Shown one piece after another: positions 1 to 62,600 of a DNA stretch of 64,000 bases. How positions within the stretch are numbered: the stretch's first letter is position 1; each line of letters begins with the position of its first letter. The position numbers were made by a program, and so were the translations under genes. The DNA comes from Bugula neritina. Its lineage: Eukaryota > Animalia > Bryozoa. The notes under the pieces are model-generated. The model saw only the letters and a program-made list of their open reading frames with translations. It was not told the origin of the DNA and searched no databases. The stretch spans positions 8,399,751 through 8,463,750 of the forward strand of contig OZ037773.1 in NCBI GenBank assembly GCA_964035545.1, read 5' to 3'.

Positions 1-3000
1 TTTAGTTTCATTAGACTTAGTAGATGTAGTAGCAGACACAGTATATGTAGCAGGAACAGTAGATGTAGTAGGAACAGTGGATGTGGTAGACATAGTAGAT
101 GCAGTAGTAGCCACAGCAGATGTAGTAGCTACAGTATATGTAGTAAACACAGTAGATGTGGTAGCAGGAACAGTAGATGTAGTAGTAGGAACAGTAGATG
201 TGGCAGCAGCTACAGTAGATGTAGTAGCTACAGTAGATGTAGTAGGGACAGCAGATGTAGTAGCTACAGTATATGTAGTAGGAACAGTAGATGTGGCAGT
301 AGCTACAGTAGATGTAGCAACTGGTTTAGCAGATGCAGTGTCCACTTCTGTAGATGAAAAGATTGACTTGGCAGAGGCAGTGATAGTTTCAGCAAGCACA
401 GTACCTGTATCACCAAAAATATAACCATGAAGTCATACATTTGCTTGTCTGAGAAGCAGAAAAACAACATCTTGTTAGCACAGGGCTGCTTTTAAAAACT
501 TCAAAATCTGAAAAAAATCATTTACCTGATTCGATGGGACTGTTTGGCACAAGTTTATAAAAAACTTGACAAATCGGGAACCACCATGGACAAGTAGTCT
601 GTCCAACTGTTGATGTTGAGGAGGTTGGAGAAGTTGCAGTGACTGGAAAAGCAGTGAGCTTGATGTGGAAAAGACCAATACCATGGAGACGCAATTCACT
701 CATGGATATGAAAATTTGAAATATTCGTTAAACTTTCCACATATTTTGCTAGAAGTCCAGAACTCATTATCCTGTTTGATTGAGATACTAAAAGTTAGTT
801 TAAAAAGTGTTGCAAATTCTGAGGCTTCCATATAAATTGTATAATATTACAACCCTTTGTGATATTGAGTACAAGCAGTTGACCCACAAAGCTTAGCTAC
901 AAGCGCTCTATGGGACATTAAATTTGTAACAATATGTATAAAACCTAAGCACAAAATCAGTGCTATGTGAACACTTGAATATGACCCTCAGGTGTTACCA
1001 TTTTAGACGTAGCAAGTTTTTTAAATACTTGATTACCTTTTAATAGATGAGACGAAGCTTCCATGTGCCCAGTAGCTTTGGCTAGATATCCCTTCAAAGG
1101 TTTTGTATTTTGTGTGACTACGAGAATTTCTGTTTTCTCAGCAATTTTTGGAATGGTGTTGGCTAATTTAGCCGGAGAGTTCCCAGAGTTTGTTGTGTTA
1201 TCATCTGTTTCATGTGCTTTGGGAGGTAAAGTAGTGGTTTTGCTCAACAGTGTGCTAAGGTAGCTGGTGATGGCTGGCTTTCCTTCAGTTGTAGTAGTCT
1301 GGTCAGAGATGGTGCTTGTTTGAGTGGTTAGCTGGGTAGTCGTAGTGATTGGTTTAGTAGATGTAGTGGTTGGTTTAGTAGGTATAGTGGTTGGTTTAGT
1401 AGGTGTAGTGGTTGGTTGAGTAGGTGTAGTGGTTGGTTGAGTAGATGTAATGGTTGGTTGAGTAGTTGTAGAAATTGGTTGAGTAGATGTAGTACTTGGT
1501 TTAGTAGTTGTAGTGGTTGGTTTAGTAGTTGTAGTGGTTGGTTGAGTAGATGTAGTGGTTGGTTGAGTAGATGTAGTGGTTGGTTGAGCAGTTGATTGAG
1601 TAGATGTAGTAGTTGGTTTGGTAGTTGTAGTGGTTGGTTGAGTAGATGTAGTGGGTGGTTTAGTATATGTAGTGGTTGGTTTAGTAGGTGTAGTGGTTGG
1701 TTTAGTAGGTGTAGTGGTTGGTTGAGTAGATGTAGTGGTTGGTTGAGTAGATGTAGTGGTTAGTTGAGCAGTTGATTGAGTAGATGTAGTAGTTGGTTGG
1801 GTAGATGTAGTGGTTGGTTGAGCAGTTGATTGAGTTGATGTAGTGGTTGGTTTGGTAGTTGTAGTGGTTGGTTGAGTAGATGTAGTGGTTGGTTGAGTAG
1901 ATGTAGTGGTTGGTTGAGTAGATGTAGTGGTTGGTTGAGCAGTTGATTGAGTAGATGTAGTGGTTGGTTTAGTAGATGTAGTGGTTTGTTTAGTAGGTGT
2001 AGTGGTTGGTTGAGTAGATGTAGTGGTTGGTTGAGTAGATGTAGTGGTTAGTTGAGCAGTTGATTGAGTAGATGTAGTAGTTGGTTGAGTAGATGTAGTG
2101 GTTGGTTGAGCAGTTGATTGAGTAGATGTAGTGGTTGGTTTGGTAGTTGTAGTGGTTGGTTGAGTAGATGTAGTGGTTGGTTTAGTAGTTGTAGTGGTTG
2201 GTTGAGTAGATGTAGTGGTTGGTTGAGTAGATGTAGTGGTTGGTTGAGCAGTTGATTGAGTAGATGTAGTGGTTGGTTTGGTAGTTGTAGTGGTTGGTTT
2301 AGTAAATGTAGTGGTTGGTTTAGTAGGTGTAGTGGTTGGTTGAGTAGATGCAGTGGTTGGTTGAGTAGATGTAGTGGTTGGTTGAGTAGATGTAGTGATT
2401 GGATTAGTAGGTGTAGTGGTTGGTTGAGTAAATGTAGTAGTTGGTTGAGTAGATGTAGTGGTTAGTTGAGTAGATGTAGTGGTTGGTTTAGTAGATGTAG
2501 TGGTTGGTTTAGTAGGTGTAGTGGTTGGTTGAGTAGATGTAGTGGTTGGTTTAGTAGGTGTAGTGGTTGGTTGAGTAGATGTAGTGGTTGGTTTAGTAGA
2601 TGTAGTGGTTGGTTGAGTAGATGTAGTGGTTGGTTGAGTAGATGTAGTGGTTGGTTGAGCAGTTGATTGAGTAGATGTAGTGGTTGGTTTAGTAGATGTA
2701 GTGGTTGGTTTAGTAGGTGTAGTGGTTGGTTGAGTAGATGTAGTGGTTGGTTTAGTAGGTGTAATGGTTGGTTGAGTAGATGCAGTGGTTGGTTGAGTAG
2801 ATGTAGTGGTTGGTTGAGCAGTTGATTGAGTAGATGTAGTGGTTGGTTGAGTAGATGTAATGGTTGGATTAGTAGATGTAGTAGTTGGTTGAGTAGATGT
2901 AGTGATTGGATTAGTAGATGTAGTGGTTGGTTGAGTAGGTGTAGTGGTTAGTTGAGCAGTTGATTGAGTAGATGTAGTAGTTGGTTTAGTAGTTGTAGTA

Positions 3001-4234
3001 ATTAGTTTAGTAGTTGTTGTGGTTGGTTTAGTAGGTGTAGTGGTTAGTTGAGTAGGTGCAGTGGTTGGTTGAATAGGTGCAGTGGTTGGTTGAGTAGATG
3101 TAGTGGTTGGGTGAGTAGTTGTAATAGCAGGTTCAATAGTTGCAGTCATTCCTTGAAAAATCAAGTTGAGTTTTTGACTAGACGTAATGACCGATTGCCT
3201 AGTTGTAGTGTCTAGATCACCAGATCTAGCGGTTGCTGTACAAAAATAAAGTGGATAATGTGGTTTAACAATAGTTAGAATAAGCAAATAGATGGCAATG
3301 TGTAGCCATCTTAGTTAAAGCTGTACCCCAAATGTTAAAACCCTTTTGAATAAAATAAGAAAACTGGTTTTTATGGAGACTTTAATGGCTGAGATTGCTT
3401 TATTGAGCATGTTTTTGCGATGAAATGAAACTAGAAAATGTCTTGCCGGTGCTACAAAAATCTTTGCTAAAGCATTTCAAAAAGTATAAAATAAAATTCA
3501 CAAAACACTTATTTTTCTTAGCTTTGAAAAATTCAGATTTTTTGAATCAAAATTATCATTTTCAAGTAAAAACCTTACAATAAACATAACCAAATTTATA
3601 TTTGATATTAACAGTTTTTGATAACAACATATTTAAAATATTACTTCATGTAACGAATTTATTTGCTTGCAGCAATATGTGTTCTAGTTATCAGAACAGC
3701 CACAGGCAGTAACAAAATTAGCATTTTTATTAAAAAAGTTAATCAAGCCGTCAAATGTTTTTAACAAGACTCTGTTGAGTTGGTTGCAAATAAAGTTCAG
3801 TGTTGGTTTAAACATGTGAAAAGACAAATATTGGCATTTCAATAAAATTGTGGAGTTACAATTTTAACATGATAGAAGTTATTTAAAATATTTTACTGCT
3901 TGAGGGCTCATACTAAGGGTTCTCTAATGTAGGTTTTCAACTGTTACATATATCTATGTGTGTGTGTGCGCGCGCTCGCGCATGTATATAGCAACGTGAG
4001 TAGCCTTTTAAAGATACTATACTTCACATACAATTTTGTAACATACAATATTAAATCTCAGATGGCAAGACTGAATAAAAGTATGCTACTTGGTGTTTAT
4101 TCGCAGCACAGAGGTGGACACATTGTAAACTTCTACTTCACTAAATCTTATGTTTAAGGATAATCTTTAGTACCCCAACTAATTCTTGGAATTATGAAAA
4201 GACAGGAACCAAGTATCATGAGTAGCCCTTGCAT
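1..4234 (-). CDS. Secreted Thr/Pro/Ser-rich mucin-like glycoprotein (3' end beyond left edge of window)
   Basis: Exons 4234-4174 (MQGLLMILGSCLFIIPRISW, hydrophobic signal-peptide-like), 3235-1037 (ATARSGDLD..., about 600 aa of TTTSTQP-type repeats), 642-526 (VTATSPTSS...CPWWFPIC...) and 404-<1 (GTVLAETIT...VATSTVATATSTVPT). All junctions are GT-AG and phase 1. The donor at 1036 is inferred; the ORF could instead end at the stop at 963. Confidence 0.75.
1330..3120 (-). repeat. Coding 21-nt tandem repeat (7-aa PTTTSTQ/PTTTPTK units, PTS mucin domain)
   Basis: + strand unit gtagtggttggttgagtagat with an interspersed gagcagttgattga variant; the frame is open across the array only on the - strand. 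Confidence 0.9.
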
Positions 4235-6510: not shown

Positions 6511-9500
6511 TGAGTGGAAGCTTTTTTAAAAAGTCTTTAGCAGCTAGCAATATCAAGATACAAGCATCTGGAAGTGGCGGAAGATCTGTACACAATGAAG
6601 ATTTTAATGGTGTGTCATTGTCATTGTGTGAATCTTCAAGTTCATTAGTGATTAGACTTAGTATTTTACTATTTAGTAGTATAATTCTTAGTATTGTTTA
6701 TAATTTAATTTTATTAATTAGATTCAGTATTGGTATTACTATTACTATTAGATTTAGTAGTACAATATGAAAATGAATTACCGATTGGTGATTAGTATTA
6801 CGTATTTTAATTCACGATGACAATTACTCAGGATGAATTCGACTTATTCGTATATCTATAACAGTAATAGTAATACTAATAGGCCTACTGTAATAGCAAT
6901 ACTAATAGTAATAGTTATACTAATTTAGTTTAACAAAAATAAAACTATTCTAGTTTAATACTAATAGTAATAGTAATGCCATTTGACTTTGCCAATTGGA
7001 AACCAGTAAAACTAGAAGTAAAACTAAATGTAATACTAATACTAATAGTAATAGTAATACTTATACTATTAGATTTACTATGTCTATTAGTATTAGTATT
7101 ACTAATACTAATAGTAATAGTATTACTATTAGTGATATTAGTAAATTTAATAAATTTAGTAAATTTAAATACTAAATTTAAATAGCATTGTAAATTTTAA
7201 TTAGAGTTATAATAATAACATTCACTTAATCTTATTGATACATTGGATTTGGACTTTGAATTTGGAAAATTACAATGATAATGATTATCATTATAACATT
7301 AGGTTTAACTTTGAGGATCAGGATGTATACTAATAATTTACTACGTCTGCTGGCAATCCCTTGTAAAATTAATACTAATTCAGTAATTGGTATTATATTT
7401 TGTATTAGTATAGCTGTATCATAATCATAGTATGTGTATTAGTATAAATATAATAACAGTATTGTTTGTTCAGCAAAGTATTGTTGTTGGCATTGCTATG
7501 GGTGTGGTAAAATCACTATTAGTACTAGTATAATGCTATAAGTATAACTATCTAACTCTTAACTTTTAGTCATAATGATAATTGTAGCCATGTATTTAGT
7601 GCTACTACAGTCTACAAGCATTAGTATAACTAAAATTAAAAATAACATCAGCTGTATTAGCATAATTAGCAATTTAAGAAATATAGAATTAGATGTTTTT
7701 CGTTCAACTTTTTCCCATGGACTCAAGTTGATATACTTACAGTAATGGCAAAATGTTGAGGTTGCTATTATAATCATAGTTATCTAATGGTCCTAGTGAT
7801 ACTACAAGTTATACAGTATAACTGTTACTTGACTATTAATGGTGTAATGTACTGTGTTACTTTTGATGTATATTATAGGGGTAGCTTTGTGAATGTAATG
7901 TCTAAAGGTAGTGTGCAGATGGTAAAAATTTATGTTTTCTACCACATGAAGAAGACTTGCTCCAATATTTTATCCAATTATTGATGCGAGCTTTATGTTT
8001 TATTTTGAATGTTATAAAATATATAGTACTAGAAATTAACATTTTTTGTGTAAAGCTTTTCTTTGTTTAAAATTTGTTTATTCCATTACATTTATTACTG
8101 GTTGAAATTGCCATTAGGTTTGTTAGTTAGTTGTATGGGTAGTTTGCACTTGAATGTTACTTTTTATTAGACGGTTCAATGGACGACCAGTACGACAGAC
8201 AGTCCTACGGTGGTAAGGGGCCGAGGACCATCAGCTATAGGGCTAGAGGCAGGGGCCGTGGAAGGGGTGGCTTTAGAAACAACTACAGTCAGCATGATCA
8301 CAGAGGTGATTCATTTACACTGCACTGCTCTACATTAGTCTATGCTTTGCTTGATCCAAGACATAGTGACTATTGCCTGCTTATTGGTAGCAGGAAACAC
8401 TACTTCTGTGGAAAATGTTAAGTTTCTAAATTTGTTTACAGTTTCACTATCAATAAGGTGTATTCCTTATCTTCAATTCATATTCATTGTTTTATCACAG
8501 ATAATAGAACGTTGACTGAGAGATTGGGGGAGAGGATGGGGTACCGTGGTCGAGGTAGAGGCAAGAAGGGGCCTGGGGAGTATATAGCCCTGAAACATCA
8601 AGACCAAGGTCATAGCAAACCAGTCAATGGACCACAGTGGTATCAAGTGACAGTGAGTGTCAGATTTCGTGATTACTTTGACTTTAGAGCAGCTCCTAGT
8701 AGCTTCTTATTATGTTGTTTATTATCATAGGTTAGATATGATGAGGTCACTTTGTGGGGCACACATAGACACACACAATGAAAAATATGAATCAATTTAA
8801 TCATGATAGTATATGGAGTGAAACTCAAATCCTTATATATTGTCTATTTTTGCTTAGCCTCTATTATAAAAAGTTATATATAAAAAGTTATGTATAAAGA
8901 GTTATTATAAATAGTTATATATATTATAAAGAGATAAATACATAACTCAAATATGTTTCCCTTCCAGATACCATATGGTACCCAAGCTGGTAAAGACTTT
9001 ATATACGAGTCTATCAACGAGTTACTAGACATTCCCTTTCAGCCAATCTCCTACAAAGAAGAAGGAAAGGCCTCCGTGTTCTACGTGGAGTTGTCTTTCT
9101 CGTCAATCGAGGCGTTGAAGGCCGTCAATAAAAGGATTACAATGCCAAACGGGTTCAAGGTCAGTATGCAATCTGCCCTGTGTTTCCCTTCATTACGTAT
9201 CATTAATCATTGCTTAGTTCACAGGCATCATTGGTCTTCCACCTGATTTCTACTTGTCATGTGACCATCTTGTATCTCTTGCCTTCTCTTCAGATGATGG
9301 TGACTGTGAGACAAGGGTCCCCGCCAGTTCCCAAGGTAGTCGAGGGAGCGTTGATGGATAAACTGCTGAGTACAATGAATGAGCTCTACAGCACAGAAAA
9401 CAAAGTGTTAGACCTCTCTGCTCTGCACAAACACGAGAGTAAGTGTTAGTCAGTCTGTCTGCCTGTGCATCTTCCTGGTCATCTGTCTGTGCGTCTCTCC

Positions 9501-12500
9501 ACTCATCTGCCTGTGTGTCTCAACTATTGAAGTACTGGAGTTATATTGGAGAGGGAGATTATGTGTACGTCTGCTACTTCTTATGTGTATGTCTGCTACT
9601 TATTATGTGTACGTCTGCTACTTCTTATGTGTACGTCTGCTACTTCTTATGTGTACGTCTGCTACTTTTTATGTGTACGTCTGCTACTTCTTATGTGTAC
9701 GTCTGCTACTTCTTATGTGTACGTCTGCTACTTTTTATGTGTACGTCTGCTACTTCTTATGTGTACGTCTGCTACTTCTTATGTGTACGTCTGCTACTTC
9801 TTATGTGTACGTCTGCTACTTTTTATGTGTACGTCTGCTACTTCTTATGTGTACGTCTGCTACTTCTTATGTGTACGTCTGCTACTTTTTATGTGTACGT
9901 CTGCTACTTCTTATGTGTACGTCTGCTACTTCTTATGTGTACGTCTGCTACTTCTTATGTGTACGTCTGCTACTTTTTATGTGTACGTCTGCTACTTCTT
10001 ATGTGTACGTCTGCTACTTCTTATGTGTACGTCTGCTACTTCTTATGTGTACGTCTGCTACTTTTTATGTGTACGTCTGCTACTTCTTATGTGTACGTCT
10101 GCTACTTCTTATGTGTACGTCTGCTACTTCTTATGTGTACGTCTGCTACTTCTTACAGGTCTAAAGCCCGACTTCCTCCCTCTGAACAGACCTCAGGTGA
10201 TGACCAGTGTCGTCAGCATCATCTGTGAGCACATCGCACAAGATCTGGTGGCTCTCAACCTCAGCAACAACAGACTTTCCTCTCTGGTACACCTTGAGAA
10301 GGCTGTGTCCTCCACCCCCAACGTGCAGGGCCTCGATCTCTCCAATAACCCTGAGGTACACAGTCTACAGTCAATAGACTCTTACTCTACCTGCTTTAAA
10401 TTTGAAATAATTCAATTGCTGCATTCAGGAGTGGCTACTGTTACAGTGGAATTTTCTAGTTGCTATCCACTGGCGCGTTGTTAGTTTTCAAAAGCTGATT
10501 TTTTTAACAGTTTTGTTTTTTTCACGACCATGTTTATGTTGAGATGTTCTTACTTGTCTATGAATACTGAATGTAAATTCTGATTACTTCAAGTTGAGGG
10601 AAAGTGAATTAGATCGACTTAAAGGTTGGAATCTGACAGAAATCAACTTGACTGGCACCTCCATTGCTAAAAGGAACAGCGATGATTTCAACACATATCT
10701 GTCGTATGTACCTGTTCAGTTTATCTTTCTAACCATTCTCTGTATTAGTAACCTATAAGCCGTTTACTCTCCTAGCATCGTATGTTGTCAATCCAACCGC
10801 CGACTAGCGCCTCTACCTTCGTGTCTCGTATAGTCGTTGCTGGTTTAAACAGACTCAATAGCCACAGAATGTTTCTGTATTACAATAAAACCTGAGTAAT
10901 GCTCAAGTGAAAGGAAACAGTTTTTGTATTTTGTAATTGCATATTTACTGCTCGCTTTTTCCTCTTAATAGATTAGCAAGTTGTTTATTTTTTATAATTT
11001 GCAAAAATGTATTATAATATAATAAAATATAATATAATAATATAATGCCCATATTTACCTTGATGAGAAACTATTGTGTTTAGTTCTCGATATCTTGATC
11101 AGTAACTGTTATACATAAATTTTATTGATTTCTTGATATAAACAGTTTTATAGCTTATAGTTTTTTAGTCTTTTGCAAATAAGGAGGAAGTTTTTAATTT
11201 TATTTTGATTCTTTAAAATATTATTTAATTAAGCATGTGTCGGTCTTGAAAATATTGTGTTTTTAGAAACTCTTTTTAAATTGTTACTCATTCATGTTAC
11301 TCTAATTGTCATTTCCAAGTGTCTTTTTGTTTTGGTTTTTTGGTTTTCCTACTTATGTTATGCTAATCTTTTTTTCCATTGCATTATCACTCTGATATTT
11401 TTCGCAATAGTTTACTATGTTTAGTTTTATCTTTGCTCTGCTTATCATGTTACACTAGTTACTAGGTTATTATTTCTGTGTTACTTAGTCAATGCTCTAA
11501 AAATCTTCCATTAGAATGTAGTTATTTATCACAGTATTGTGTACTCGTAGTGAATTCTTTTTCTTTGTAACTGCTCAGTCTTGTATTTGTCTAACTGAGT
11601 GGACAATTTATACTTTTTACTGAATAGTTATTGCTTGTTTTTTGTCTACACGATCAAAATGAGTAATCATGTAATTGACAGCTTAGATTTAAAAGTAGGG
11701 AAATGATTTACCATTGTATGGAGAAGTGACACGTATCAGAAGTGTTGTACGGGACACTTGCCACGTGTGTCACAACAGGCTGCACACATCGTGCAGAGAC
11801 CTAAGTGTGGGCACTGAGAGTGATAGACTGAGTAGTACTACAGTGTTACTACTCACTCAGTCAGTCTCACTCTTAGTAGTGAGTTATGCTGACTTAATCA
11901 CTCTTGTTTCACTCATGTGAAGCTGCCACATTGGTGAGATCATTTGATACATCTGTAACTTTGTCAATGATCTTCTCATGTTGCTAGATATGCTAAGCTG
12001 TCTCCAGGCATTGATTGCTCATTTTTGTCTCCTTTTGGTACTGGTGGTAGTAATGTAGCCACATCAGTTCAATGTATAGCTTATATCATTTATAATGGGA
12101 ATTACTAGATTTACACTACTTTCTAGTAGCCATTTCTCATTTTTGTTTTGCTATGTTGTTAGTTTTTATTGATTCCTTTACTAACATGTAATTGATGTGT
12201 CCTTCATCCTATTGAGATGCGGTAAAAAATGTAGTAATATCTTTGGTTTGTACGTAATTATAACTAATCTCTTCATATCACTTCTTTGTGTTCATTTTGC
12301 TATCATATCTATTCTTTTGAGACTAGAAATAACATCATGGATTATGTCATCATCTGTGTACAGTTTCTTAATTATTGACTATTATGTGTACCTTGATTGT
12401 GTGAATATTTTTATTTCTATGCAAGTTACAGAACCTGTCCTATATTTCTCAACTAAATGGCAATACAACCAGATATAATATTTTTCTATTTCTCATTTTA

Positions 12501-15500
12501 TGTTGAATTTTTTATTTTTGTCTTTTAATACTTAAGGCTCTGATTTAGCATGCCTGTGATTTTTCATGTTAGTAATCTTTTTTTCAGTCTCTTAGAATAG
12601 TATAAATAGATTATTTTCATTTTTTAGATGATCTTATTTTTATTTTCTTCTGACAATTATTGACTGATGTCAAATTTAAGTATGTTGAAAAATCTTTCGT
12701 AATAATACTTGGCTGCTTCTTAACTTTTTATATATTTTTTCAAATGTTTTGTTGGGCTGTAGCACTAATGTTTTTATGTGTTAGTCAGCAAACCAGCATT
12801 TTTAATCCATTACTTTATCATAGATCATTTTAAAATTTATTAAATTATTTTTATTTTATGAGTAGTATTAAAGGAATTGTTAGATTTTCTAAATGCCTGT
12901 TTGCAGCTCCTACTCTAATAATAGACACATTTTGCTTTAAACTTACTTCAGTGTTCCCATTTTAATTTTACTTAAATTTTAAAATATTCATTTTCCAAAA
13001 GTTCTTCAATAGGTTTGTGCATTCTATTTTTATCTGAACCTCAAAATAAATTCTATTTTTATTCTTAATTTACGATATTTTTATAGTTATCTATTTTTGT
13101 ATCATGTTTTTATATCTGTTTACTTTTTGATGCTTCATATTTGAATTTTGTTTGAACCATTTATAGTTTTTTTAAAGTTGTTTTTTGTCATGTATATTCT
13201 GTGAATAATGTGCTAATCTTCTTGCATTTGCATCAATATTATGTTGCATGACATTTCTGGGTAATGTACTGCCAATATTGTAACTTCTATAAGAGATTTT
13301 GGATGCCTGGTGGACACTAGAGGTGCACCAAGTAAACATTTTCATGTTACCTGGTGCACCTCACACCAAATCTGACCTGCTGTTTGGTTTCTAAGGAAAT
13401 ATTCTATTGGTTGATGTCTCATACCGAGCCATTCTATTGGCTTCAATAATCTTAAAGTTGTTGGATTGGCAGCATATAGTGATAGGAAGCAGCAAACACC
13501 GCTGTGGTTTAAGAGAAATTGTCCTTCAGAAATATGAGTTCATTTTGTGCTAAACATAGTATTATTGGGGAACAGCTCCCTGTATATGCCAGACTTTGCT
13601 TTGATGGTTGGTGAAATGGAGTTTGTACTGTTGATGGTATCTGAGGTTGGTGACATACTATTATTACTATTACTACTATTATTACTAATTACTCTATATA
13701 CTATTACTATATACTACTACTACTAGTTATACTACTAGTACTGGTGACATACTATTACTACTACTACTACTAGTACTAGTACTGCTGTTGCAGCTGCTAC
13801 TGCTACTACATTTACTGACTAATTAACTAATTTACTCATTTAGTTCCACACGTTTGTGTAGCAGATTTTGATTTGTTTTATGAAATACTTCTCTGTGTTG
13901 TAGAAATGTGAGAAAAAGATTTCCCAACATAGTTATTCTGGTAGGCCTACTATTCTATGTATTCACAGAAAACTTGTTACACCTTCAAGTTACTTGAGTA
14001 TTTATTGACATTACCTCAGCAGGGGTCTTGCTAAGTATTAATTATTTGATGAAGTAGTTCCAATGTTGCCAATGCTAATTTATCATCTTCCTTGTGCTGA
14101 ACACACATTTTCTCAGAGCTCTGTGTTTTATCTTCACTTGATAATCATGTAACTTCCTTCTTCCTTGTTGCATCAGTATTTGCCTAACAAACTCATCTCT
14201 TGATAGGACGGAAACAATGCACCACCACCAATTAAATTCGAAATCGAAGAGGCCGAGGAAAAACGACTCCCTGTGCCGAAATTTAATTTCTTTGGAGTAA
14301 ACAATGAATGTCAGAGTCTGGTGATGCGGTTTATAGAGCAGTATGTATGCCTTCTCATCGGTTATGTAGTCTTTGATTGTTCTTGTATAGCCTGCGGGGA
14401 GTGGGGGGGGGGCTTCACACACCTTCCTTGGTAACTTCACCTTGCCTTGGGATCCTCTGCTCCCTGCATAAACTAGAATTATAGGGATGGGATATTAGAC
14501 CAGGTGGGCACAGGTTGGTGTATCATACACATACTACCTGCTGGGTGTATAGTATGTAGTGTATAGGTGGGCACAGGTTGGTGTAAGATATACATACTAC
14601 CTGCTGGGTGTATATAATGCCCAGCATCAACATCTGTCTGCAGGTACATACAGCTGTTTGATTCAAATCAGAGAAGCAACCTCATAGAGGCGTACCATGA
14701 CCATGTTACTTTCTCCACCAGCTTCTGGTTCTACCCGGATGAGAACGCAAAGTAAGCAGTAGTTAGCTGTATCATATATGCTATCCTATGTGTTAGTTGA
14801 CTGTATCATATCCTATGTGTTAGTTGGCTGTATCATATCCTATGTGTTAGTTGGCTGTATCATATCCTATGTGTTAGTTGGCTGTATCATATCCTATGTG
14901 TTAGTTGGCTGTATCATATCCTATGTGTTAGTTGACTGTATCATATATCCTATGTGTTAGTTGACTGTATCATATCCTATGTGTTAGTTGGCTGTATCAT
15001 ATCCTATGTGTTAGTTGGCTGTATCATATCCTATGTGTTAGTTGGCTGTATCATATCATATCCTATGTGTTAGTTGACTGTATCATATCCTATGTGTTAG
15101 TTGGCTGTATCATATCCTATGTGTTAGTTGACTGTATCATATCCTATGTGTTAGCTGGCTGTATCATATCCTATGTGTTAGTTGGCTGTATCATATCATA
15201 TGTGTTAGTTGGCTGTATCATATCCTATGTGTTAGTTGGCTATATCATATCATATGTGTTAGTTGGCTGTATCATATCATATGTGTTAGTCGGCTATATC
15301 ATATATCCTATGTGTTAGTTGGCTGTATCATATCATATCCTATGTGTTAGTTGGCTGTATCATATCATATGTGTTAGTTGACTGTATCATATCCTATGTG
15401 TTAGTTGACTGTATCATATCATATGTGTTAGTTGGCTGTATCATATCCTATGTGTTAGTTGACTGTATCATATCCTATGTGTTAGTTGACTGTATCATAT

Positions 15501-18500
15501 CCTATGTGTTAGTTGACTGTATCATATCCTATGTGTTAGTTGGCTGTATCATATCCTATGTGTTAGTTGGCTGTATTGTATCCTATGTGTTAGTTGGCTG
15601 TATCGTATCCTATGTGTTAGTTGGCTGTATCATATCCTATGTGTTAGTTGACTGTATCATATCCTATGTGTTAGTTGACTGTATCATATCCTATGTGTTA
15701 GTTGACTGTATCATATCATATCCTATGTGTTAGTTGGCTGTATGTGTGTTAGTCAGCAGTTTTGAGCACATCTGGCTAGCTGCCGATGTTCTACACACCA
15801 CTATACTAATTCTATACTGACATGTCATCACCTAAAATGTGTATAAACTTGTTTAATGAATCTCTTTTGGAATTGTCCACTCACCAAAGGGGAAGCCTGG
15901 TTTTAGCACTAGTCTCTCTATCGCCCTGTCTATTGCGTTCACGCTGCTATTCCAATCTGGGTAGATGTGTTACCTGTTTACACTTCAGTTCAATCACCGA
16001 GAGTTTACCTGTGACTTGTAGGCAGCATCGGTTTGACATTGGCTGCAGCAGAAACCTGGTGAGGATTCCACCACAAGAACGTAACGGGAAACGTGTACAC
16101 TACGGGAAGGAGGCAGTTGTTAAGTTCTTGGCCGAGGAGTTCCCGGAGACGAATCACTTGATGGAGACTCTCAATGCTGATGTTATTCATCACAGTGTAA
16201 GTATATACGAGTAGTGTAAGTATAGTAGTGTAAGTATAGTAGTGTAAGTACATGAGTAGTGTAAGTATAGTAGTGTAAGTATAGTAGTGTAAGTATAGTA
16301 GTGTAAGTGCATGAATAGTGTAAGTATATGAGTAGTGTAAGTATAGTACTGTAAGTATAGTAGTGTAAGTATAGTAGTGTAAGTGCATGAATAGTGTAAG
16401 TATATGAGTAGTGTAAGTATATGAGTAGTGTAAGTATATGAGTAGTGTAAGTATATGAATAGTGTAAGTATATGAGTAGTGTAAGTATATTACTATCTTG
16501 TGATTGTATCTGACATACTAACGTTGTGGTTGCGCTGTTTAGCCTCAGATGTTGAGTTTCACCATAACGGGCCTGTATGAGGAGTCCCGGAGCAGCAAGT
16601 CTTTCAAGGTCACAAGGTTATTCTCCAGAAACTTCACAGCCGTGTACCAAGGCGCAGGTGAGCTTCGAATATACACACTCGGTGCTCTGCTATATATTAT
16701 AATAATATATATAGTAAAATAATATATATATAGTAGAATAACATAATATTTTGTGTAATAACATATATTGCAAAATAATTATACAATAGAATAATATAAA
16801 TAGTATAATAATATTATATATGCAGTAGAATAATATAATATGCACTCACACTCTATGCTCTGCTATACAGTAGAATAACCTTGCAGGTATTGTCATCATC
16901 AGCGAGCAGCTTTCCTTCTCTAACGCCAACCCCGATAGACGAGGTCGGATGGTTGCTAACGGCAGCAAAAGGTCAACTGCCGCTCTCGGCAGCCAACCGT
17001 CCGTCTCCACCGTCTCTGCGCCGGTAGATGAGACAGCCCAGAATGCAATGGTGCAGAGGTTCATGATCGACTCTGGCATGAATGCTCATTACAGCAGAGA
17101 GTAAGTGTATTCCTTCATATCTCATTGTAGTGTGTGTTGTTACATGTGTAGTGTGTGTTGTTACATGTGTAGTGTGTGTTGTTACACGTGTTGTGTGTGT
17201 TGTTACACATGTTGTGTGTGTTGTTACATGTGTGTTGTTACATGTGTGTTGTGTGTGTTCTTATACATGTAGTGTGTGTTGTTACACATGTAGTGTGTTG
17301 TTACACATGTAGTGTGTGTTGTTACATGTGTTGTGTGTGTTGTTACATGTGTTGTGTGTGTTGTTACACGTGTTGTGTATTATACTAAGTTTTCTCTGTT
17401 TTAGATGTCTGCTGGTCCACAATTGGAACTATGAAGAGGCTGGCAAAAAGTTTACCATTCTTAAGGTATGGCACTATAATATACTATATACTACTACTAT
17501 ATACTACTACTATATACTACTACTATATACTACTATATACTATATACTACTCACTATATACTACTACTATATACTACTACTATATACTACTATATACTAT
17601 ATACTACTCACTATATACTACTACTATATACTACTATATACTACTATATACTACTATATACTACTCACTATATACTACTACTATATACTACTACTATATA
17701 CTACTATATACTACTACTATATACTACTACTATATACTACTACTATATACTACTACTATATACTACTACTATATACTACTACTATATACTACTACTATAT
17801 ACTACTACTATATACTATACTATATACTACTATATACTACTATATACTACTACTATATACTACTACTATATACTACTACTATATACTACTACTATATACT
17901 ACTACTATATACTATACTATATACTATTATATACTACTATATACTACTACTATATACTACTACTATATACTACTACTATATACTACTACTATATACTACT
18001 ACTATATACTACTACTATATACTACTACTATATACTACTACTATATACTACTACTATATACTATACTATATACTACTATATACTACTATATACTACTACT
18101 ATATACTACTACTATATACTATACTATATACTACTATATACTACTATATACTACTACTATATACTACTACTATATACTACTACTATATACTACTACTATA
18201 TACTACTACTATATACTACTACTATATACTACTACTATATACTACTACTATATACTATACTATATACTACTATATACTACTATATACTACTACTATATAC
18301 TACTACTATATACTACTACTATATACTACTATATACTACTATATACTACTACTATATACTACTACTATATACTACTATATACTACTACTATATACTACTA
18401 CTATATACTACTACTATATACTACTACTATATACTACTATATACTACTACTATATACTACTACTATATACTACTACTATATACTACTACTATATACTACT

Positions 18501-18983
18501 ATATACTACTACTATATACTACTACTATATACTACTACTATATACTACTATATACTACTACTATATACTACTACTATATACTACTACTATATACTACTAC
18601 TATATACTACTATATACTACTACTATATACTACTACTATATACTACTACTATATACTACTACTATATACTACTATATACTACTACTATATACTACTACTA
18701 TATACTACTACTATATACTACTACTATATTATTACCATACTAATACTTTTACTATATACAACTAACTACTACCAACTATCCTTCCCTATTGATACTTCAT
18801 AAACTAAATCTGTTTCAAGTGAATTCAATGTTATGATTATATCCACTAGTCCATTATAATACGTTATGTAATTCAACTGTCATTCCTCCATCCACTATTT
18901 AGTGAGCATTTGGAAGGTTTTTATGTACAGTGATTATTCTCTTTTAGGCTGAAGGCAAAATCCCTGCTGATGCATACTGCTAA
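6510..18983 (+). CDS. NXF1: Nuclear RNA export factor 1 (TAP/Mex67/sbr), 15 coding exons, about 636 aa
   Basis: Exons 6510-6609, 8171-8305, 8501-8652, 8968-9159, 9294-9438, 10159-10355, 10594-10703, 13904-13940, 14207-14340, 14644-14751, 16022-16196, 16543-16657, 16887-17100, 17405-17465, 18948-18983, all phase-compatible. RGG-rich N-terminus; RRM (WYQVTIPYG); LRR (LVALNLSNNRL, LDLSNN, RFPNIVILDG); NTF2-like domain (FIEQYIQLFDS, AYHD, LFSRNF); UBA/TAP-C (SGMNAHYSRECL..HNWNYEEA, GKIPADAY). Exon 1 is the least certain. Confidence 0.95.
9560..10155 (+). repeat. 21-nt intronic minisatellite (ttatgtgtacgtctgctactt[c/t]), about 28 copies, ending at the NXF1 exon 6 acceptor
   Basis: Direct tandem repeat; the last unit becomes ctacttcttacag|. 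Confidence 0.95.
10704..13903 (+). other. NXF1 cassette intron between the 110-nt and 37-nt exons (positional homolog of the retained, CTE-bearing mammalian intron 10)
   Basis: Upstream exon 10594-10703 is 110 nt and downstream exon 13904-13940 is 37 nt. They encode LRESELDRLKG...TYLS and NVRKRFPNIVIL, matching the human ELDKIKGL...TYIS and AIRERFPKLLRL region. This is the longest intron of the gene (3200 nt). Confidence 0.85.
11726..11978 (+). ncRNA. Candidate structured RNA element (multi-hairpin) inside the NXF1 cassette intron
   Basis: Hand-found stems: gtgacac/gtgtcac (11726/11767) enclosing aagtgt/acactt; ctgcac/gtgcag (11780/11791); actgagagtga/tcactcttagt with inner gagtagta/tactactc (11813-11877); gatcatt/aatgatc (11938-11972). 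GC content is raised relative to the U-rich surroundings. Confidence 0.4.
14757..15745 (+). repeat. 27-nt intronic minisatellite (atcctatgtgttagttg[a/g]ctgtatcat), about 36 copies, starting just after the exon 10 donor
   Basis: Direct tandem repeat that generates the spurious SYVLVGCII ORFs. Confidence 0.95.
16194..16490 (+). repeat. 14-16-nt repeat built from the exon 11 donor (agt|gtaagtat), 19 GTAAGT copies
   Basis: Counted directly; the first copy is the functional donor at 16197. Confidence 0.9.
17128..17380 (+). repeat. About 21-nt degenerate minisatellite (gtgtgttgttacatgt...) filling NXF1 intron 13
   Basis: Direct tandem repeat. Confidence 0.9.
17472..18730 (+). repeat. (tac)n/tata compound satellite, about 1.26 kb, starting at the exon 14 donor
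   Basis: tactactactata / tactactata units, almost only A, C and T. Confidence 0.95.
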
Positions 18984-30267: not shown

Positions 30268-30932
<665 letters not shown>

Positions 30933-31397
30933 GTGGGCCAATAATCTTTAATGGCTGCAACTGTTTTAACAACTTTTGGATTTATCTATGAGACTGTTAT
31001 AACACTGATAGGTAAACATTATGTATAATGCTCGTGTGGTTGCGTAGTAGAAATTAGCTATTAACTTTTCGCGACTAATTTTAAACTTTATCACAGAGAG
31101 TATTTAGTAGTTAGAGAAAGAGCAGTCATGATAAGCAAGCTTTCCACAAACAAACATTATTTGGAATTAATGGTGAAAGACAAAGAAAACACTAGAATAT
31201 TCTTTATATAATAATAACATCTTATAAAAATATAGTAAGAAACGTATTTCTGCTATATGACCAGGAGCTATGACCAGGAGCTATGACCAGGAGCTATGAC
31301 CAGGAGCCAGGGTCATATTTGTTATGGTTAGTTAGAATAAGCTTAAAAACAACAGTCAATGCATCAAATATCTCTCCCAGAGGTTCTTTCTTTACAT

Positions 31398-39793
<8,396 letters not shown>

Positions 39794-41964: not shown

Positions 41965-47884
<5,920 letters not shown>

Positions 47885-50313: not shown

Positions 50314-52921
50314 TCATGGAAACTCCTTGCTAAGGTTGACTTCAGCACAAAATGGCGAAAGTCCAAAATGGCTGACTAAAACTCTCTCAGATGTAATGAG
50401 TGAACCTTCTGACCATCCATAGAATGCTCCATCTTTTGTTGACGCAAAGAAAGCGTCTCCCGTGATGTATATTTCAGCCTCAGAAAATGGCTTCAGCGTC
50501 TTGAACTGCAACTGATATGAGTCCACACCAACCTGGGAAAGACTGCCCGCGCTGACACGCTTGGAGTCCCAAATCTTTATGGAGGCCCCCACTGGAGCTG
50601 GTATACTCTTCAAACCTTTGAAAACATTGAAAAACAGAGTTTATAGAATAGAAATAGACAAAAAGGTTGGTACAGTGATAGAAAAATTGAGAAAAAAAAC
50701 CTGTGTTCTAGATAAGAAATGTAGCATGAGGAGTTATGTTCTCACGAGAATTTTAACCTACGTTCCAAACGAAGATTTAAAGAACTTAGGTTATATCAAT
50801 TTCTCTACTACTCCTCCTAAATTTAGACAAGTAGTTAGAAGAGTTCTTTGAAACAAAAAACCAGCTTATTACTTATAGAAATATTTTATAAATTAGAATG
50901 TAAAGCTAATATTTTGTATTGATTATTTGCGTTTGTATGTGTAACACTTTAATGCTTGAGGTGAGTGCAGTAATTGAGAAATTGAGAAAAGCCTTAGTTT
51001 TAGATGTAGTTAAAATGTTTTGGTTTTGCAAAAATTTCACCCTGCACTCCAAACCAAAATTTATTAAGAAAGTAACGAGCTTGGACTATTCAAATTTCTC
51101 CACTACTGCACCTTTTCAAAATCGATATCTAGCTAGGCAGCTAATCACCAATAGTTGTGCAGCACTTTATGTCTCACCAAACACAGTGCAGAGCTGCTGC
51201 TGCACAAAGTCTACCAGCTTTTGACTCGGCAAATATTCACTTGGCACATTTCCAGCAGACGGTTGAAATCTCTCATATCTGGACTGGTTTAGTCCGTCAA
51301 ACACATCTGAACAGGTGAATGTGTATGCGGCTAGTAGAGTGGCGTATCCTCCCATTTTACCTTGACCTCCTCTAGCGGCCACACAGGATATTGGTAGGTC
51401 AGTCTCAAACCTGCCCGACACCAAACCTGCACCTTCCCACCATGCATCGGTATACGTGAGAAACACTTTTGTACTCTTCAAGCTGATTGTATTAGAAAAG
51501 AGTTCTCTAAACTCCATGTTTCGTTTGGATGGATAATTCCAGACGATAGACTCAATTCCACTTCTGTTACAAGCTAAAATCAACCTTTTCCCTGTAAATG
51601 GCTCTGCTGATGAAACTGTCGCCACTTTAAACGCATTTTCACTTTCAGTAACTTCAACTGCTGCTTCCCCAGCTAGAAGGGTTGCATTATCCATTTTGTT
51701 AAGGTTTGATACCAGCTTTTTAGTGAGCTCGATCATGCCATCTTTGACGCAGTAATCTTGCTCTAATGGGTCAAAGTCTTTGTGTTTCTTAGCAAACATT
51801 GCAGCAGCAGCTACTGAAATATCCATGGTGTGGAGCATAAAACTTCGGCCAAGTATATCAGTGTTTGAGGCGTAAGAGTAGTATTGACGTAAACTCATGT
51901 CTGTAGCTTTCTGGCCTGTTTCTCCCACTGTGCCCTCAAAAAGATTTCCATTTTCCGGTGCCTTAATTTGAAAGTCGTAATTCTCAGGATTCAGGTATGG
52001 TAAATCATGTTCAGTTAGTGAATACACTCTTTTGTAATCATCTTCACAGTAAATGGGTGTATTTTTATAAAATCCTATTAACTTCTTTTCATTGCTTTCC
52101 TCCTCACCCCAAAAGGTTTCTATCTCTAAATTCAGATCTTTTATAAGCTTGTATAAAATCTTGTGACGAGATGGTAAAAACCTGTAAGACAAAAATAACA
52201 TATACTGTGAAGAATCATTGTGCTACATGCCAGCTACTTGTGTATAACATGAATGCATGGTTGGTTAGGTTTATCATGGTTCTATTAGTTACTTAGTAGA
52301 ACACTGGATCACTACTTCACATGATTTGAATGGGTCTGTATGGTATGCTGCCCCAAACCCCAAACCCAGATGGAAAGCTTTTTTTAAAGTGGGCTAAGGA
52401 CTTATTCATATGTGGCACAGGAGCAAATATGACTAGAAGTGAATGCTCTCCCTATTCCCTAACATCACTGATGGCCTTTACTAGCGATCTAACTCATAAC
52501 CTCGTGTTCACTAAGCCAGGTTACTAATCCACTCATAAAAGTGCTATGAGTTTGATAAACCAAATGATTTTTTTCTCCTACATTTATTTATTGCGGATAG
52601 TTTTATTGCTATCAGATTGAACCCATGCAATCAAAAAGCCATCACCAGTTTTTTGCTGTTGCGAAAATCTTTTCAGTCGCGGGTCTTGTAATTGGAATTG
52701 GAACAAATATTTTTAATTGTAAAAACTTTATTATTTGTATATGTTTACCTCATTGCACCAAAGCCAGCCATGTGACCACCAGGCATTTCACAAGTCAGAT
52801 ATCTGCCTCCAAACTCTTTCTCGGCTTCCAGAACCAGAACTTTGAGGGTGGTGGAAGTGGCCAACCTCCAGGCTGTATACAGACCACCTATCCCTCCGCC
52901 TACTATTATAACATCGTACAT
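50314..52921 (-). CDS. FAD-dependent amine oxidase / L-amino-acid oxidase family protein (achacin/aplysianin-like fold), 3 coding exons, about 492 aa
   Basis: Exons 52921-52749 (MYDVIIVGGGIGGLYTAWRL...LVLEAEKEFGGR...GAMR: GxGxxG and GG motifs), 52181-51178 (FLPSRH..., KVFLTYTDAWW, TDLP) and 50615-50314 (IYITGDAF...GWSEGSL). Phases 2 and 1 are consistent. Confidence 0.85.
50665..51113. mobile_element. Two decayed copies (about 155 nt each) of a small TIR element, family D, in the oxidase intron
   Basis: Copies at about 50665-50818 and 50959-51113 share cagt..tagaaaaattgagaaaa ... aatttctc.actact.c.cct. Left gtgcagtaattgagaaattg is the inverse of right caaatttctccactactgcac. Confidence 0.5.
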
Positions 52922-59600: not shown

Positions 59601-62600
59601 TTGTTGATTATTTTGTTAATTCACATGGTTTTTCTAGATGTTTCCTTTTCACATTTCTACAGTTAATAGGTATGCTATGAACTGTTTTATCTAACAGTGC
59701 CTAAACAATGCTTTACCCTCTAGCAGCGTCGTCTAATACCCCAGAGTAGAGACACCCATACCTTTTGTACAATGTGTTACCACTAGTCAACCACTATGTC
59801 ATCAACTGCTATTTGGGTTCGCTCTGAATTACAACTTACAAACAATGCCTAATGTGAAAATTTACAGAGCGCCCAATACTCTTGTTAACACAGCTCTGAT
59901 GTCTTGTCGAAAACCAACTGCCAACTTCTACATCTTTAGGAAAAGCTTTGATATTAAAAAATCAAACTGCCATAAGCAACATGGCTGTAGTAGAAGGAGA
60001 GTAGCCACTATATTCTTCCAGGCTCTGAAACAACCTTGACCTTGCATGCTGACCCTCGTGTCATGTCGCTTGTTATGATAACTTTGTACTCTTATAAATT
60101 ATATTACGATTTATGCTGTTACCTACCATATCTTCTCTGCACCAGTAACTACCACTCAAAGGTCATCACAAAGCTCTTGTTTTAGGCTAACAAACCAAAC
60201 TGGAAGCAGAGGCAACAGGATATGACCTCACAGAGTGCAGGAAGCCAACAACTCCCAACAGGGAGACCGAAGCAGCCTGCGACTTCTGCACGGCCAGCCA
60301 AGCCGGCCCACACTCTACCAGAATCAAGTGGTCCAATCATGAAGGGAGTGGCCAACTCCGCAGCAATGGCAATAGAGGCAACTGCTGAGATACAGGGTGG
60401 GTAGAGGCAACTGCTGAGATACAGGGTGGGTAGAGGCAACTGCTGAGATACAGGGTGGGTAGAGGCAACTGCTGAGATACAGGGTGGGTAGAGGCAACTG
60501 CTGAGATACAGGGTAGGTAGAGGCAACTGCTGAGATACAGGGTGGGTAGAGGCAACTGCTGAGATACAGGGTGGGTAGAGGCAACTGCTGAGATACAGGG
60601 TGGGTAGAGGCAACTGCTGAGATACAGGGTGGGTAGAGGCAACTGCTGAGATACAGGGTGGGTAGAGGCAACTGCTGAGATACAGGGTGGGTAGAGGCAA
60701 CTGCTGAGATACAGGGTGGGTAGAGGCAACTGCTGAGATACAGGGTGGGTAGAGGCAACTGCTGAGATACAGGGTGGGTAGAGGCAACTGCTGAGATACA
60801 GGGTGGGTAGAGGCAACTGCTGAGATACAGGGTGGGTAGAGGCAACTGCTGAGATACAGGGTGGGTAGAGGCAACTGCTGAGATACAGGGTGGGTAGAGG
60901 CAACTGCTGAGATACAGGGTGGGTAGAGGCAACTGCTGAGATACAGGGTGGGTAGAGGCAACTGCTGAGATACAGGGTGGGTAGAGGCAACTGCTGAGAT
61001 ACAGGGTGGGTAGAGGCAACTGCTGAGATACAGGGTGGGTAGAGGCAACTGCTGAGATACAGGGTGGGTAGAGGCAACTGCTGAGATACAGGGTGGGTAG
61101 AGGCAACTGCTGAGATACAGGGTGGGTAGAAACGTATGCTCCGGCAAGTTAGACTTTGTGATAGTAGGTTTACTTGTTACTGCCAGTTATAGAATTTCAT
61201 ACTTTAGTGATTGCAAGCCTTGTGAAAAACTTGATTTGAATATTTACTAATATTTGTATCTATATTTACTGTATAATTTACAGGTGTATACTCTATGTAT
61301 CTACTGTGTACTCTATATATCTACTGTATACTCTATGTATCTACTGTATACTCTATGTATCTACTGTATACTCTATGTATCTACTGTGTACTCTATGTAT
61401 CTACTGTGTACTCTATGTATCTACTGTATACTCTATGTATCTACTGTGTACTCTATGTATCTACTGTGTACTCTATATATCTACTGTATATGTGACTCAC
61501 AGGTATATAATCTATGTAATTACTGTTCAGGTGTGAGGAACAGGATGGCCACTTTGAGACAGGAAGCAGACAAGGCCAATGAAAGGGCAGATGAGATGCA
61601 GAAGACGGTGTCTGAATTGACTCAGAGATTGTACGAGACGGAGAAGGAGCGCGACAGCTTACACAAGTATGTCACACAGGCTAACTCGCGAACTTCTGCT
61701 AACTTATTGATAGGATAAAACAACCCAGCAAAGGCTACCAGTAGAATGATTTTCGTAATTTGTTGGGACTAAAATTTTAGATACAGTTGTAAGTAAGACC
61801 GGTAGATGCAGTAATGGAAAATTAAAAAAAAGAGATGCCATAGATCAGAAATGTAGCAAAATAAGTTATGTGCCCACAAGATATTCAACTCAAGCTAAAT
61901 CTTCTAAAGAAAATTAAAGAACTTGGGCTACTGAAGTTTCTTCTTTACTGCATGTAAATATTGCTCCATGCACTGGTTGCAGGCAGAAAGATGATCTAGA
62001 AGATAAAGTGTTCAAAGCGGAGAGTGAGTACAGAGTGGTCTCCGAGAAACTAACCGAGACGGACAGAAATCTGGCCAATCAGCAAAATGCGGTACTAAGT
62101 CTATATGTCGTCTGCTAGATTTTTCTTCTCTCTTTCTTAGTATTTAGCTAAAACGAATTCGATGTACAACATCCTTTATAGAATAAAAACCATGATGGGC
62201 ATCACAAATAATAGTTGCATTGCGACGTGAGAGGAGTTGTCTTCTAATTTATCGAGTAACATAGAGCTGTAAAGGGTTGTTTAGTACTTATGTCCTGAGT
62301 ACGTTTCAGATGAAAGGGTTGACAGAGAAGATGAACTACATGGAGAGGGCAGAGGAGACATATAAGCAGCAGATGCACGACACAAATGAGAGAAGCTCCA
62401 AGGTAGGTGTGAGGTCCACTTTTAGCAGCTCTACTCTAACATGACTGGATGTACACAAGGTAGGTGTGAGGTCAACTTTTACAGTTCTACTCTAACATGA
62501 CTGGATGTACACAAGGAAATTTTGTGAGTCACTCAAAGGAAGGCAGAAAGTTAAACAAAGGAGTGATGATTCAGCTTAATTATTATCATTTTCATTCCGA

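Follow-up and report, generated by a model that had tools for sequence, protein, structure and literature searches.

The question raised by this locus is whether the bryozoan Bugula neritina keeps one particular intron of the gene for the nuclear RNA export factor NXF1 in a part of the transcripts, making the output of NXF1 dependent on splicing. The locus lies in a stretch of 64,000 nucleotides (nt) of contig OZ037773.1 (assembly GCA_964035545.1, positions 8,399,751 to 8,463,750), which as a whole is called the window in the following and from whose first letter all coordinates are counted unless another contig is named. Its NXF1 gene contains a cassette composed of two short exons (exons 6 and 7) separated by an outsized intron (intron 6). 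The homologous intron, intron 10, is retained in vertebrates, and a short protein is known from mammals and zebrafish (PMC4338338; PMC5170612). By analogy to other animals, the favored reading, to which a probability of roughly 55% is assigned, is that some transcripts of the Bugula gene would keep intron 6 and stop at position 10756, resulting either in a protein of 325 amino acids or in detention or decay of the RNA, and that NXF1 output would thereby depend on splicing. The finding most worth following up is that three invertebrate phyla have a constitutive transport element (CTE) in the intron homologous to intron 6, from which it is absent in Bugula.

The NXF1 gene and its cassette

The exon model was derived from open frames, GT..AG sites and alignments to homologues. 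It comprises 14 coding exons (8179-18983, plus strand), which encode an NXF1 of 600 amino acids in an unbroken frame with GT..AG at every junction. The predicted product shows the layout RGG-rich N-terminus, RRM, LRR, NTF2-like, followed by UBA/TAP-C, and the Pfam domains follow along the exons in the order Tap-RNA_bind, LRR_NXF1-5, NXF_NTF2 and TAP_C. The Tap-type RRM (PF09162) matches exon 3 (E = 6e-15), the NXF-type LRR (PF24048) matches exon 5 (E = 7e-11) and runs on into exon 6, and the NTF2-like domain (PF22602) matches exons 9, 10 and 11; TAP-C (PF03943) starts at the 3' end of exon 12 and its match is weak because the domain is split across exons 12-14. The best matches in the PDB are NXF1/TAP chains, with the LRR exon being closest to the solved human NXF1/TAP structures, and the C-terminus of the full-length model resembles the C-termini of the homologues. 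Moreover, a search with the RRM exon returned the B. neritina protein KAF6034902.1 (143 amino acids), whose start is identical to the N-terminus of the NXF1 encoded in the window. Judged by its Pfam domains and PDB matches, the gene is an NXF1/TAP/Mex67 nuclear RNA export factor, as proposed in a first-pass annotation of this DNA. The cassette consists of the following parts:

10594-10703, plus strand: exon 6, 110 nt, with AG before and GTATGT after it, ending in phase 2
10704-13903, plus strand: intron 6 (the cassette intron), 3200 nt, GTATGT...TTGTAG
13904-13940, plus strand: exon 7, 37 nt, encoding NVRKRFPNIVIL, with a pyrimidine tract and AG before and GTAGGC after it

Size and position of both exons are exactly those given by the first-pass annotation. 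Exon 6 codes for the last part of the LRR domain (positions 95-134 of 142 of the Pfam LRR_NXF1-5 profile) and together with exon 7 amounts to 147 nt, i.e., 49 codons. The cassette sits between the RNA-binding half (RRM and LRR) and the pore-binding half (NTF2-like and UBA) of NXF1. Among the 13 introns of the gene, intron 6 is the longest, as had been noted before, followed by introns of 1482, 1270 and 720 nt. It furthermore differs in composition: tandem repeats account for 165 of its 3200 nt, leaving 95% non-tandem, compared to 76-91% tandem repeat in introns 4, 9, 10 and 13, and its 3035 nt of non-tandem sequence compare with 51-308 nt in each of the other NXF1 introns. Intron 6 has a single sizeable tandem repeat, which is approximately 850 nt longer in a second B. 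neritina assembly (GCA_010799875.2, VXIV02000972.1; hereafter L001):

13656-13783, plus strand: TAC / TACTATTAC microsatellite

The surrounding window is AT-rich and laden with minisatellites. Within the gene, minisatellites with units of 22, 27, 17/76, 21 and 13 nt occur in introns 4, 9, 10, 12 and 13, respectively, and introns of this kind differ greatly in length between the window and L001 (intron 4, 720 versus 167 nt; intron 13, 1482 versus 644 nt):

9559-10155: minisatellite of intron 4
14782-15743: minisatellite of intron 9
16194-16490: minisatellite of intron 10
17126-17378: minisatellite of intron 12
17482-18764: minisatellite of intron 13

An ancient arrangement in bilaterians

In annotated NXF1 loci of relatives each exon was mapped exactly onto the DNA. 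The exon upstream (A) and downstream (B) of the cassette intron and the codons read if this intron is kept are as follows:

Window (bryozoan): exon A 110 nt; intron 3200 nt, longest of 13; exon B 37 nt; read-through 17 codons
Lingula anatina (brachiopod): exon A 110 nt; intron 4210 nt, longest of 21; exon B 37 nt; read-through 0 codons
Owenia fusiformis (annelid): exon A 110 nt; intron 2323 nt, second to intron 1; exon B 37 nt; read-through 24 codons
Lineus longissimus (nemertean): exon A 110 nt; intron 7292 nt, longest; exon B 37 nt; read-through 4 codons
Priapulus caudatus (priapulid): exon A 110 nt; intron 2114 nt, second to intron 1; exon B 37 nt; read-through 0 codons
Acanthaster planci (sea star): exon A 101 nt; intron 3248 nt, second to intron 1; exon B 37 nt; read-through 0 codons
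Porites lutea (coral): exon A 116 nt; intron 711 nt, not long for the gene; exon B 37 nt; read-through 20 codons
L002 (marine-metagenome contig): exon A 107 nt; intron >900 nt, neighboring introns 63-80 nt; exon B not reached; read-through 3 codons

The cassette donors are in phase 2 in every mapped species and the encoded peptides align. The contig L002 stems from a more distant relative (67% amino acid identity in the RRM exon), and a metagenome scan with the conserved exon-6 pattern returned only a second L002 copy. In the window and in the five mapped bilaterians the cassette intron is either the longest of the gene or second only to intron 1. The sizes of 110 and 37 nt are not due to chance, because the same pair is found in the same phase and at the same position of the protein in four other phyla. 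Since the block is also present in Lingula, Owenia, Lineus and Priapulus (in Acanthaster with 101/37 nt), the window is a member of a known ancient architecture, and the homology to the intron retained in vertebrates, which the first-pass annotation had stated, is thereby corroborated. According to the exon maps, the 110/37 cassette with its outsized intron is ancient and shared across bilaterians, and the cassette of the window is almost certainly the orthologous one. The architecture is already known in kind, with the window contributing Bryozoa as a further phylum; the Mamon laboratory has reportedly described the '110-nt exon / cassette intron / 37-nt exon' block of nxf1.

The vertebrate system is alike in several respects. 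Intron 10 of vertebrate NXF1 and its exons are homologous to the Bugula cassette and lie at the same boundary of the LRR and NTF2-like domains (Li et al., 2006; PMC4338338; PMC5170612), and the intron is long in vertebrates as well (human 1801 nt, zebrafish 3995 nt, coelacanth 3426 nt). In contrast to the vertebrate intron, which carries a CTE, the Bugula intron is devoid of it, and the intron-encoded tails are unrelated in sequence. For vertebrates it has been demonstrated that the intron is retained and that the RNA is exported and translated, whereas the Bugula cassette is known here from the gene sequence alone.

Retention of the cassette intron in other animals and a proposed mechanism in Bugula

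Retention is seen in RNA-seq contigs of two invertebrates (four sequencing runs, Logan assemblies), in which the upstream introns are removed and the cassette intron is kept. In the retaining contigs the exons encoding the RGG, RRM and LRR parts are joined, and the sequence crosses the donor and proceeds for 430-890 nt into the intron, with the ORF closing in '...YVR stop' at the donor. The contigs are:

L009, 1-1587 (SRR30522655): intron-retaining
L011, L012 and L013 (SRR24189495, SRR24189497 and SRR24189503): intron-retaining
L014-L016: further NXF1 RNA-seq contigs of the same set

Sister contigs end precisely at the exon junction and therefore fit a branch between two isoforms. Moreover, NXF1 products that end at the cassette exon boundary ('...Y-V/I-R stop') share 90% clusters with full-length forms, pairing 337 with 637 and 319 with 603 amino acids. 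For Drosophila sbr (Dm nxf1), the account of Ivankova et al. (2010) contained in PMC8151460 describes an intron-containing transcript that is enriched in heads. Drosophila has the same block and, like Bugula, no canonical CTE, as far as BLAST detects it (PMC4338338); the difference is that an intron-containing transcript is described for the fly and the gene alone is at hand for Bugula. Because of the invertebrate contigs, the vertebrate data and the fly transcript, retention is likely to occur in Bugula, too.

In the proposed mechanism, a fraction of the Bugula NXF1 transcripts would keep intron 6, as it is seen in other animals. The retained mRNA might be translated into a short NXF1 of 325 amino acids, which would be able to bind RNA and unable to bind NXT1 or nucleoporins. 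Alternatively, it might be detained or degraded, resulting in less full-length NXF1. Either fate would couple the dosage of NXF1 to the splicing of intron 6. A comparable logic is known from the autoregulatory introns and poison cassettes of SRSF3 and SRSF7, RNA-processing factors in which, as in NXF1, the kept intron adds a premature stop; these introns are ultraconserved (PMC5737842), whereas the conservation of Bugula intron 6 ends with a close relative.

The predicted short product

The read-through into intron 6 has the following position:

10702-10758, plus strand: read-through if intron 6 is kept; split serine codon, 17 codons (10705-10755), TAA at 10756-10758

The frame reads S-YVPVQFIFLTILCISNL-stop, and the peptide, its 17 codons and the stop are exactly those of the first-pass annotation. 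The truncated protein was expected there to be about 361 amino acids long; the gene model predicts 325 (307 full codons, the serine and 17 codons). Like the human short Nxf1 with its 356 amino acids, it would have RRM, LRR and a short tail and be devoid of both the NTF2-like domain and the UBA domain. Searches of protein databases with the open reading frames (ORFs) of the exon-6 read-through and of the conserved block described below gave no matches.

The human protein has 18 intron-encoded residues (PMC5170612), and the similarity in length to vertebrates that the first-pass annotation had mentioned is real. As a meaningful match it does not hold, as the length is at chance level: with a stop probability of 0.066 per codon a mean run of 15 codons is expected, and reading through into the other NXF1 introns gives 1-42 codons plus one run of 425 codons in a repeat. 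The eight exon-mapped animals and contigs have 0, 0, 0, 3, 4, 17, 20 and 24 codons, and L001 as assembled has 85 codons owing to a frame-shifting indel of 2 nt. The agreement of 17 with the human 18 codons is coincidental because of this spread among relatives (0-24; L001, 85). In several species the stop is built into the 5' splice site (AG/GTAA or AG/GTGA) and the tail is therefore of zero length; Lingula and Acanthaster have such an 'R stop' without a tail, Owenia reads through for 24 codons and the window for 17. On this comparison the intron-encoded tail is a non-conserved feature. An mRNA retaining intron 6 would carry a premature stop (TAA 55 nt into the intron) with seven junctions downstream, which is weak evidence for autoregulation because it is true of nearly any retained intron.

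A CTE in the cassette introns of three invertebrate phyla

A conserved AAGACA lies in the internal loop of every CTE unit, and SRV-1 CTE primers contain AACCTAAGACAGG and, reverse-complemented, GACGGGTAAAAG (PMC4330393). The loop is adjoined by a sequence resembling a 5' splice site, and the NXF1-binding CTE of the NXF1 gene itself was reported only from mammals, zebrafish and coelacanth, with no BLAST match in birds, reptiles, fly and worm (PMC4338338). When the cassette introns were compared all against all, only those of Owenia and Acanthaster matched each other significantly (49 nt, E = 3e-7). Their common sequence, GCCAATGACGGGTAAG ... CAACCTAAGACAGGC (AAGCCAGG in Acanthaster), corresponds to both strands of the internal loop of the CTE, and GGTAAG fits the 5'-splice-site-like sequence (PMC4338338). 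The stem flanking it differs in sequence between the two species and pairs in both. With a covariance model based on both elements, the Lingula element was found de novo (25.5 bits, E = 1e-5), and in the three-species alignment, which was fitted to the model, all 15 of 15 pairs are kept with 8 of them changed on both sides. The three elements, all of them within the NXF1 cassette intron, are:

L005 11490-11551, sense strand: CTE-like stem-loop of Owenia fusiformis, GACGGGTAAG opposite CCTAAGACAGG or a near variant
L008 13682-13749, sense strand: CTE-like stem-loop of Acanthaster planci, GACGGGTAAG opposite CCTAAGACAGG or a near variant
L017 9904-9970, sense strand: CTE-like stem-loop of Lingula anatina, GACGGGTAAG opposite CCTAAGACAGG or a near variant

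A literature search found no report of invertebrate CTEs, and the NXF1 CTEs of Lingula, Owenia and Acanthaster appear to be unreported. The covariance models made from these elements give their own members 73-96 bits, and no match came up in L001, L002, Lineus, Priapulus, Porites or the retained parts of the RNA-seq contigs. Two further matches were rejected: one of 19 bits in intron 1 of Owenia is without AAGACA, and one of 13 bits at 17277-17347 of the window is antisense, falls within the 21-nt minisatellite and represents noise.

The cassette introns of Lingula, Owenia and Acanthaster share phase 2 with that of the window, and each ranks first or second in length within its gene; the CTE-like stem-loop is present in these three and not in the window. 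Going by the motif and covariance searches, whose scores are given below, a canonical CTE is absent from Bugula intron 6. The suggestion of the first-pass annotation that this lineage uses an element different from that of vertebrates thus stands in this narrow sense only. On the sequences compared, the bilaterian ancestor appears to have had a CTE in its cassette intron, and the loss of this CTE in the Bugula lineage is more likely than an independent invention of the circuit. As there is no canonical CTE in Bugula intron 6, export of the isoform, if any, must use something else.

Conservation and structure of intron 6

The L001 assembly is very close to the window without being identical and is collinear with it at 86-94% identity over >20 kb, a span that takes in introns and flanking DNA. 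Its NXF1 region (L001 10001-19879) shows frameshifting 1-nt indels in exons 3 and 6, and NXF1 is annotated there as three separate models with 143, 138 and 294 amino acids, of which the second ends at a premature stop within exon 6 and the third starts within the cassette intron. Because of these frameshifting single-base indels, small indels in L001 are untrustworthy. At aligned sites, identity to L001 is 94.4% for coding exons, 90.3% for intron 6 and 89.7% for the other introns together. The first-pass annotation had taken the lack of minisatellites to suggest constraint; the lack itself is confirmed, and the constraint is not borne out by these values. Intron 6 is set apart by being poor in minisatellites and by its outsized unique length, neither of which is evidence of sequence constraint. 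Similarly, the strong U-richness that was thought to single out intron 6 disappears on comparison, with 42.5% T versus 40.0% in the other NXF1 introns pooled (range 31-48%).

Within intron 6, two blocks stand out in the alignment to L001:

11482-12088, plus strand: best-conserved block, approximately 94.5% identity to L001, i.e., coding-exon level
11813-11877, plus strand: hairpin H1 within this block, 23-nt arms, 9-nt loop
13254-13500, plus strand: second conserved block, 94.3% identity to L001, holding H2
13320-13362, plus strand: hairpin H2, 16-nt arms

The first block has 32 mismatches in 600 aligned columns versus 58 expected (permutation p ~0.0015), and 371 nt of it (11690-12060) fold with z = -3.1. 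H1 scores z = -3.4 in the structure scan and is kept and even stronger in L001 (-40 kcal/mol, z = -5.7); H2 reaches z = -3.1 to -4.4 and has one arm substitution in L001, which is uncompensated. A folding scan across the whole of intron 6 gave a mean z of -0.16 with just two windows below -3, one in each conserved block. Coding potential was rejected for the first block, as L001 has indels of 4 nt and 1 nt in its sole ORF. With one close, error-prone relative compared, the two hairpin-bearing blocks are suggestive only. They are the only candidates for an export element in the proposed mechanism, and it is a matter of speculation that NXF1 itself might recognize the retained RNA in Bugula via these blocks.

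The Rfam scan of intron 6 (E up to 10) returned sub-threshold noise and no family, including a mir-14 match to H1 below any threshold, and the Pfam search of the intron 6 ORFs returned no domain. A transposon origin was rejected, as no part of intron 6 has a further copy in the window or the L001 locus and its ORFs carry no Pfam domain, a result with which low-copy elements remain compatible.

Weighing retention against the alternatives

Several results weigh against retention of intron 6 as a regulatory event in Bugula. Retention, likely as it is, is extrapolated from other animals, and a long intron that is seen as retained in RNA-seq can stem from a late splicing intermediate instead of a mature mRNA. 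A search of the sense strand of intron 6 for AAGACA opposite GACGGGTAA, the internal-loop motif of the CTEs of NXF1 intron 10 and of MPMV/SRV-1, with up to 3 mismatches found none, and two covariance models applied unfiltered to the whole gene in the window reached a maximum of 6.6 bits in intron 6. The splice sites of intron 6 are ordinary for the gene; weak sites as a mark of retention were considered and dropped, as the donor has 5 of 9 U1 matches, equal to three other introns. Intron 6 is overall no better conserved than the other introns, and as its identity to L001 equals theirs, it shows no sign of general constraint. Its initial 200 nt, which would encode the tail, appear unconstrained because they are only 88% identical to L001. 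Finally, a similarity between intron 6 and the cassette intron of L002 (initial 830 nt) was rejected, the best match having 34 bits and controls reaching up to 31 bits.

The most serious of the alternatives, unlikely as it is, is the following: intron 6 might be an ordinary constitutively spliced intron, with exon sizes fixed by protein conservation and old intron positions, a length due to neutral accumulation and no isoform of consequence. Besides the ordinary identity to L001, T content, donor strength and read-through length, it would account for an intron without CTE, Rfam family or deep conservation, and for the short homologous intron of Porites (711 nt) among far longer introns. Against it stands the outlying unique length of intron 6 (3035 versus 51-308 nt). 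In five bilaterian phyla, moreover, no internal intron of the gene is longer than that of the cassette, which is also long in L002 with its neighboring introns of 63-80 nt. The invertebrate contigs show retention, and two blocks of intron 6 are conserved at the level of exons.

A rather improbable explanation, which is compatible with retention, is that size and blocks of intron 6 reflect hosted elements, either microRNA precursors (H1 and H2) or an enhancer. The sole windows with z < -3 are indeed perfect-arm hairpins of the size of microRNA precursors, one per best-conserved block, in an intron that is otherwise not unusually structured. Yet neither H1 nor H2 belongs to an Rfam microRNA family at threshold, the arm change of H2 in L001 is uncompensated and the conservation signal is modest with one close relative; hosted elements would furthermore leave the long homologous intron in other phyla unexplained. 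Improbable to a slightly higher degree is a scenario in which the ancestral CTE was lost, the long intron was kept and the block at 11482-12088 (with H1) and/or that at 13254-13500 replaced the CTE as the element by which NXF1 or its adaptors would handle the mRNA with the kept intron. The least probable explanation is a truncated isoform made by intronic cleavage and polyadenylation instead of retention of the full 3.2 kb, for instance after the AATAAA listed below, which would fit the 430-890 nt of intron reached by the contigs of other invertebrates but has against it that this hexamer is no evidence alone because its count in intron 6 is at chance level (3 versus ~2 expected), that contig ends in de Bruijn assemblies differ from transcript ends and that no poly(A) tail was observed in the contigs:

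10884-10889, plus strand: AATAAA hexamer, 181 nt into intron 6 from the 5' splice site, candidate intronic poly(A) signal

Retention of intron 6 in some transcripts, with NXF1 output depending on its splicing, is thus the reading preferred over these alternatives, at the probability given at the outset.

Other features of the window

Outside of the NXF1 gene the window contains the following:

963-3287, minus strand: open frame of 774 amino acids with Thr/Pro-rich tandem repeats (TTTSTQPTTT...) and the look of a mucin-type exon; counterpart in L001
23029-23253, plus strand; 38942-39229, minus strand; 47031-47318, minus strand: three similar exons of major-facilitator type transporters, weak Pfam MFS_1 match
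30274-30950: (GT)n microsatellite of approximately 680 nt
51167-52201, minus strand: uninterrupted frame of 344 amino acids, weakly resembling flavin amine oxidases / L-amino-acid oxidases in the PDB over their C-terminal half (E = 4e-6), no Pfam match
60182-61147: GC-rich 87-nt minisatellite, open as a repeated 29-residue frame
61545-61715: tropomyosin-like coiled-coil exon, weak Pfam match

The near identity of the two minus-strand transporter copies suggests that they are tandem paralogues.

Implications

The window adds Bryozoa to the phyla that preserve the 110/37 cassette with its outsized intron, and it provides a clean NXF1 gene model where the public annotation of B. neritina has three pieces. 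At the same time, three arguments for a function of intron 6 turn out to be empty, i.e., the match in read-through length, the U-richness and the constraint derived from the lack of minisatellites. If the conserved blocks had indeed taken the place of the ancestral CTE, this would represent turnover of a cis-element within a conserved autoregulatory circuit. Finally, a brachiopod, an annelid and a sea star have a recognizable CTE, whereas Bugula, a nemertean and a priapulid have none. It thereby becomes possible to test how old this self-recognition circuit is and its repeated loss, with Bugula being a natural 'CTE-less' comparison.

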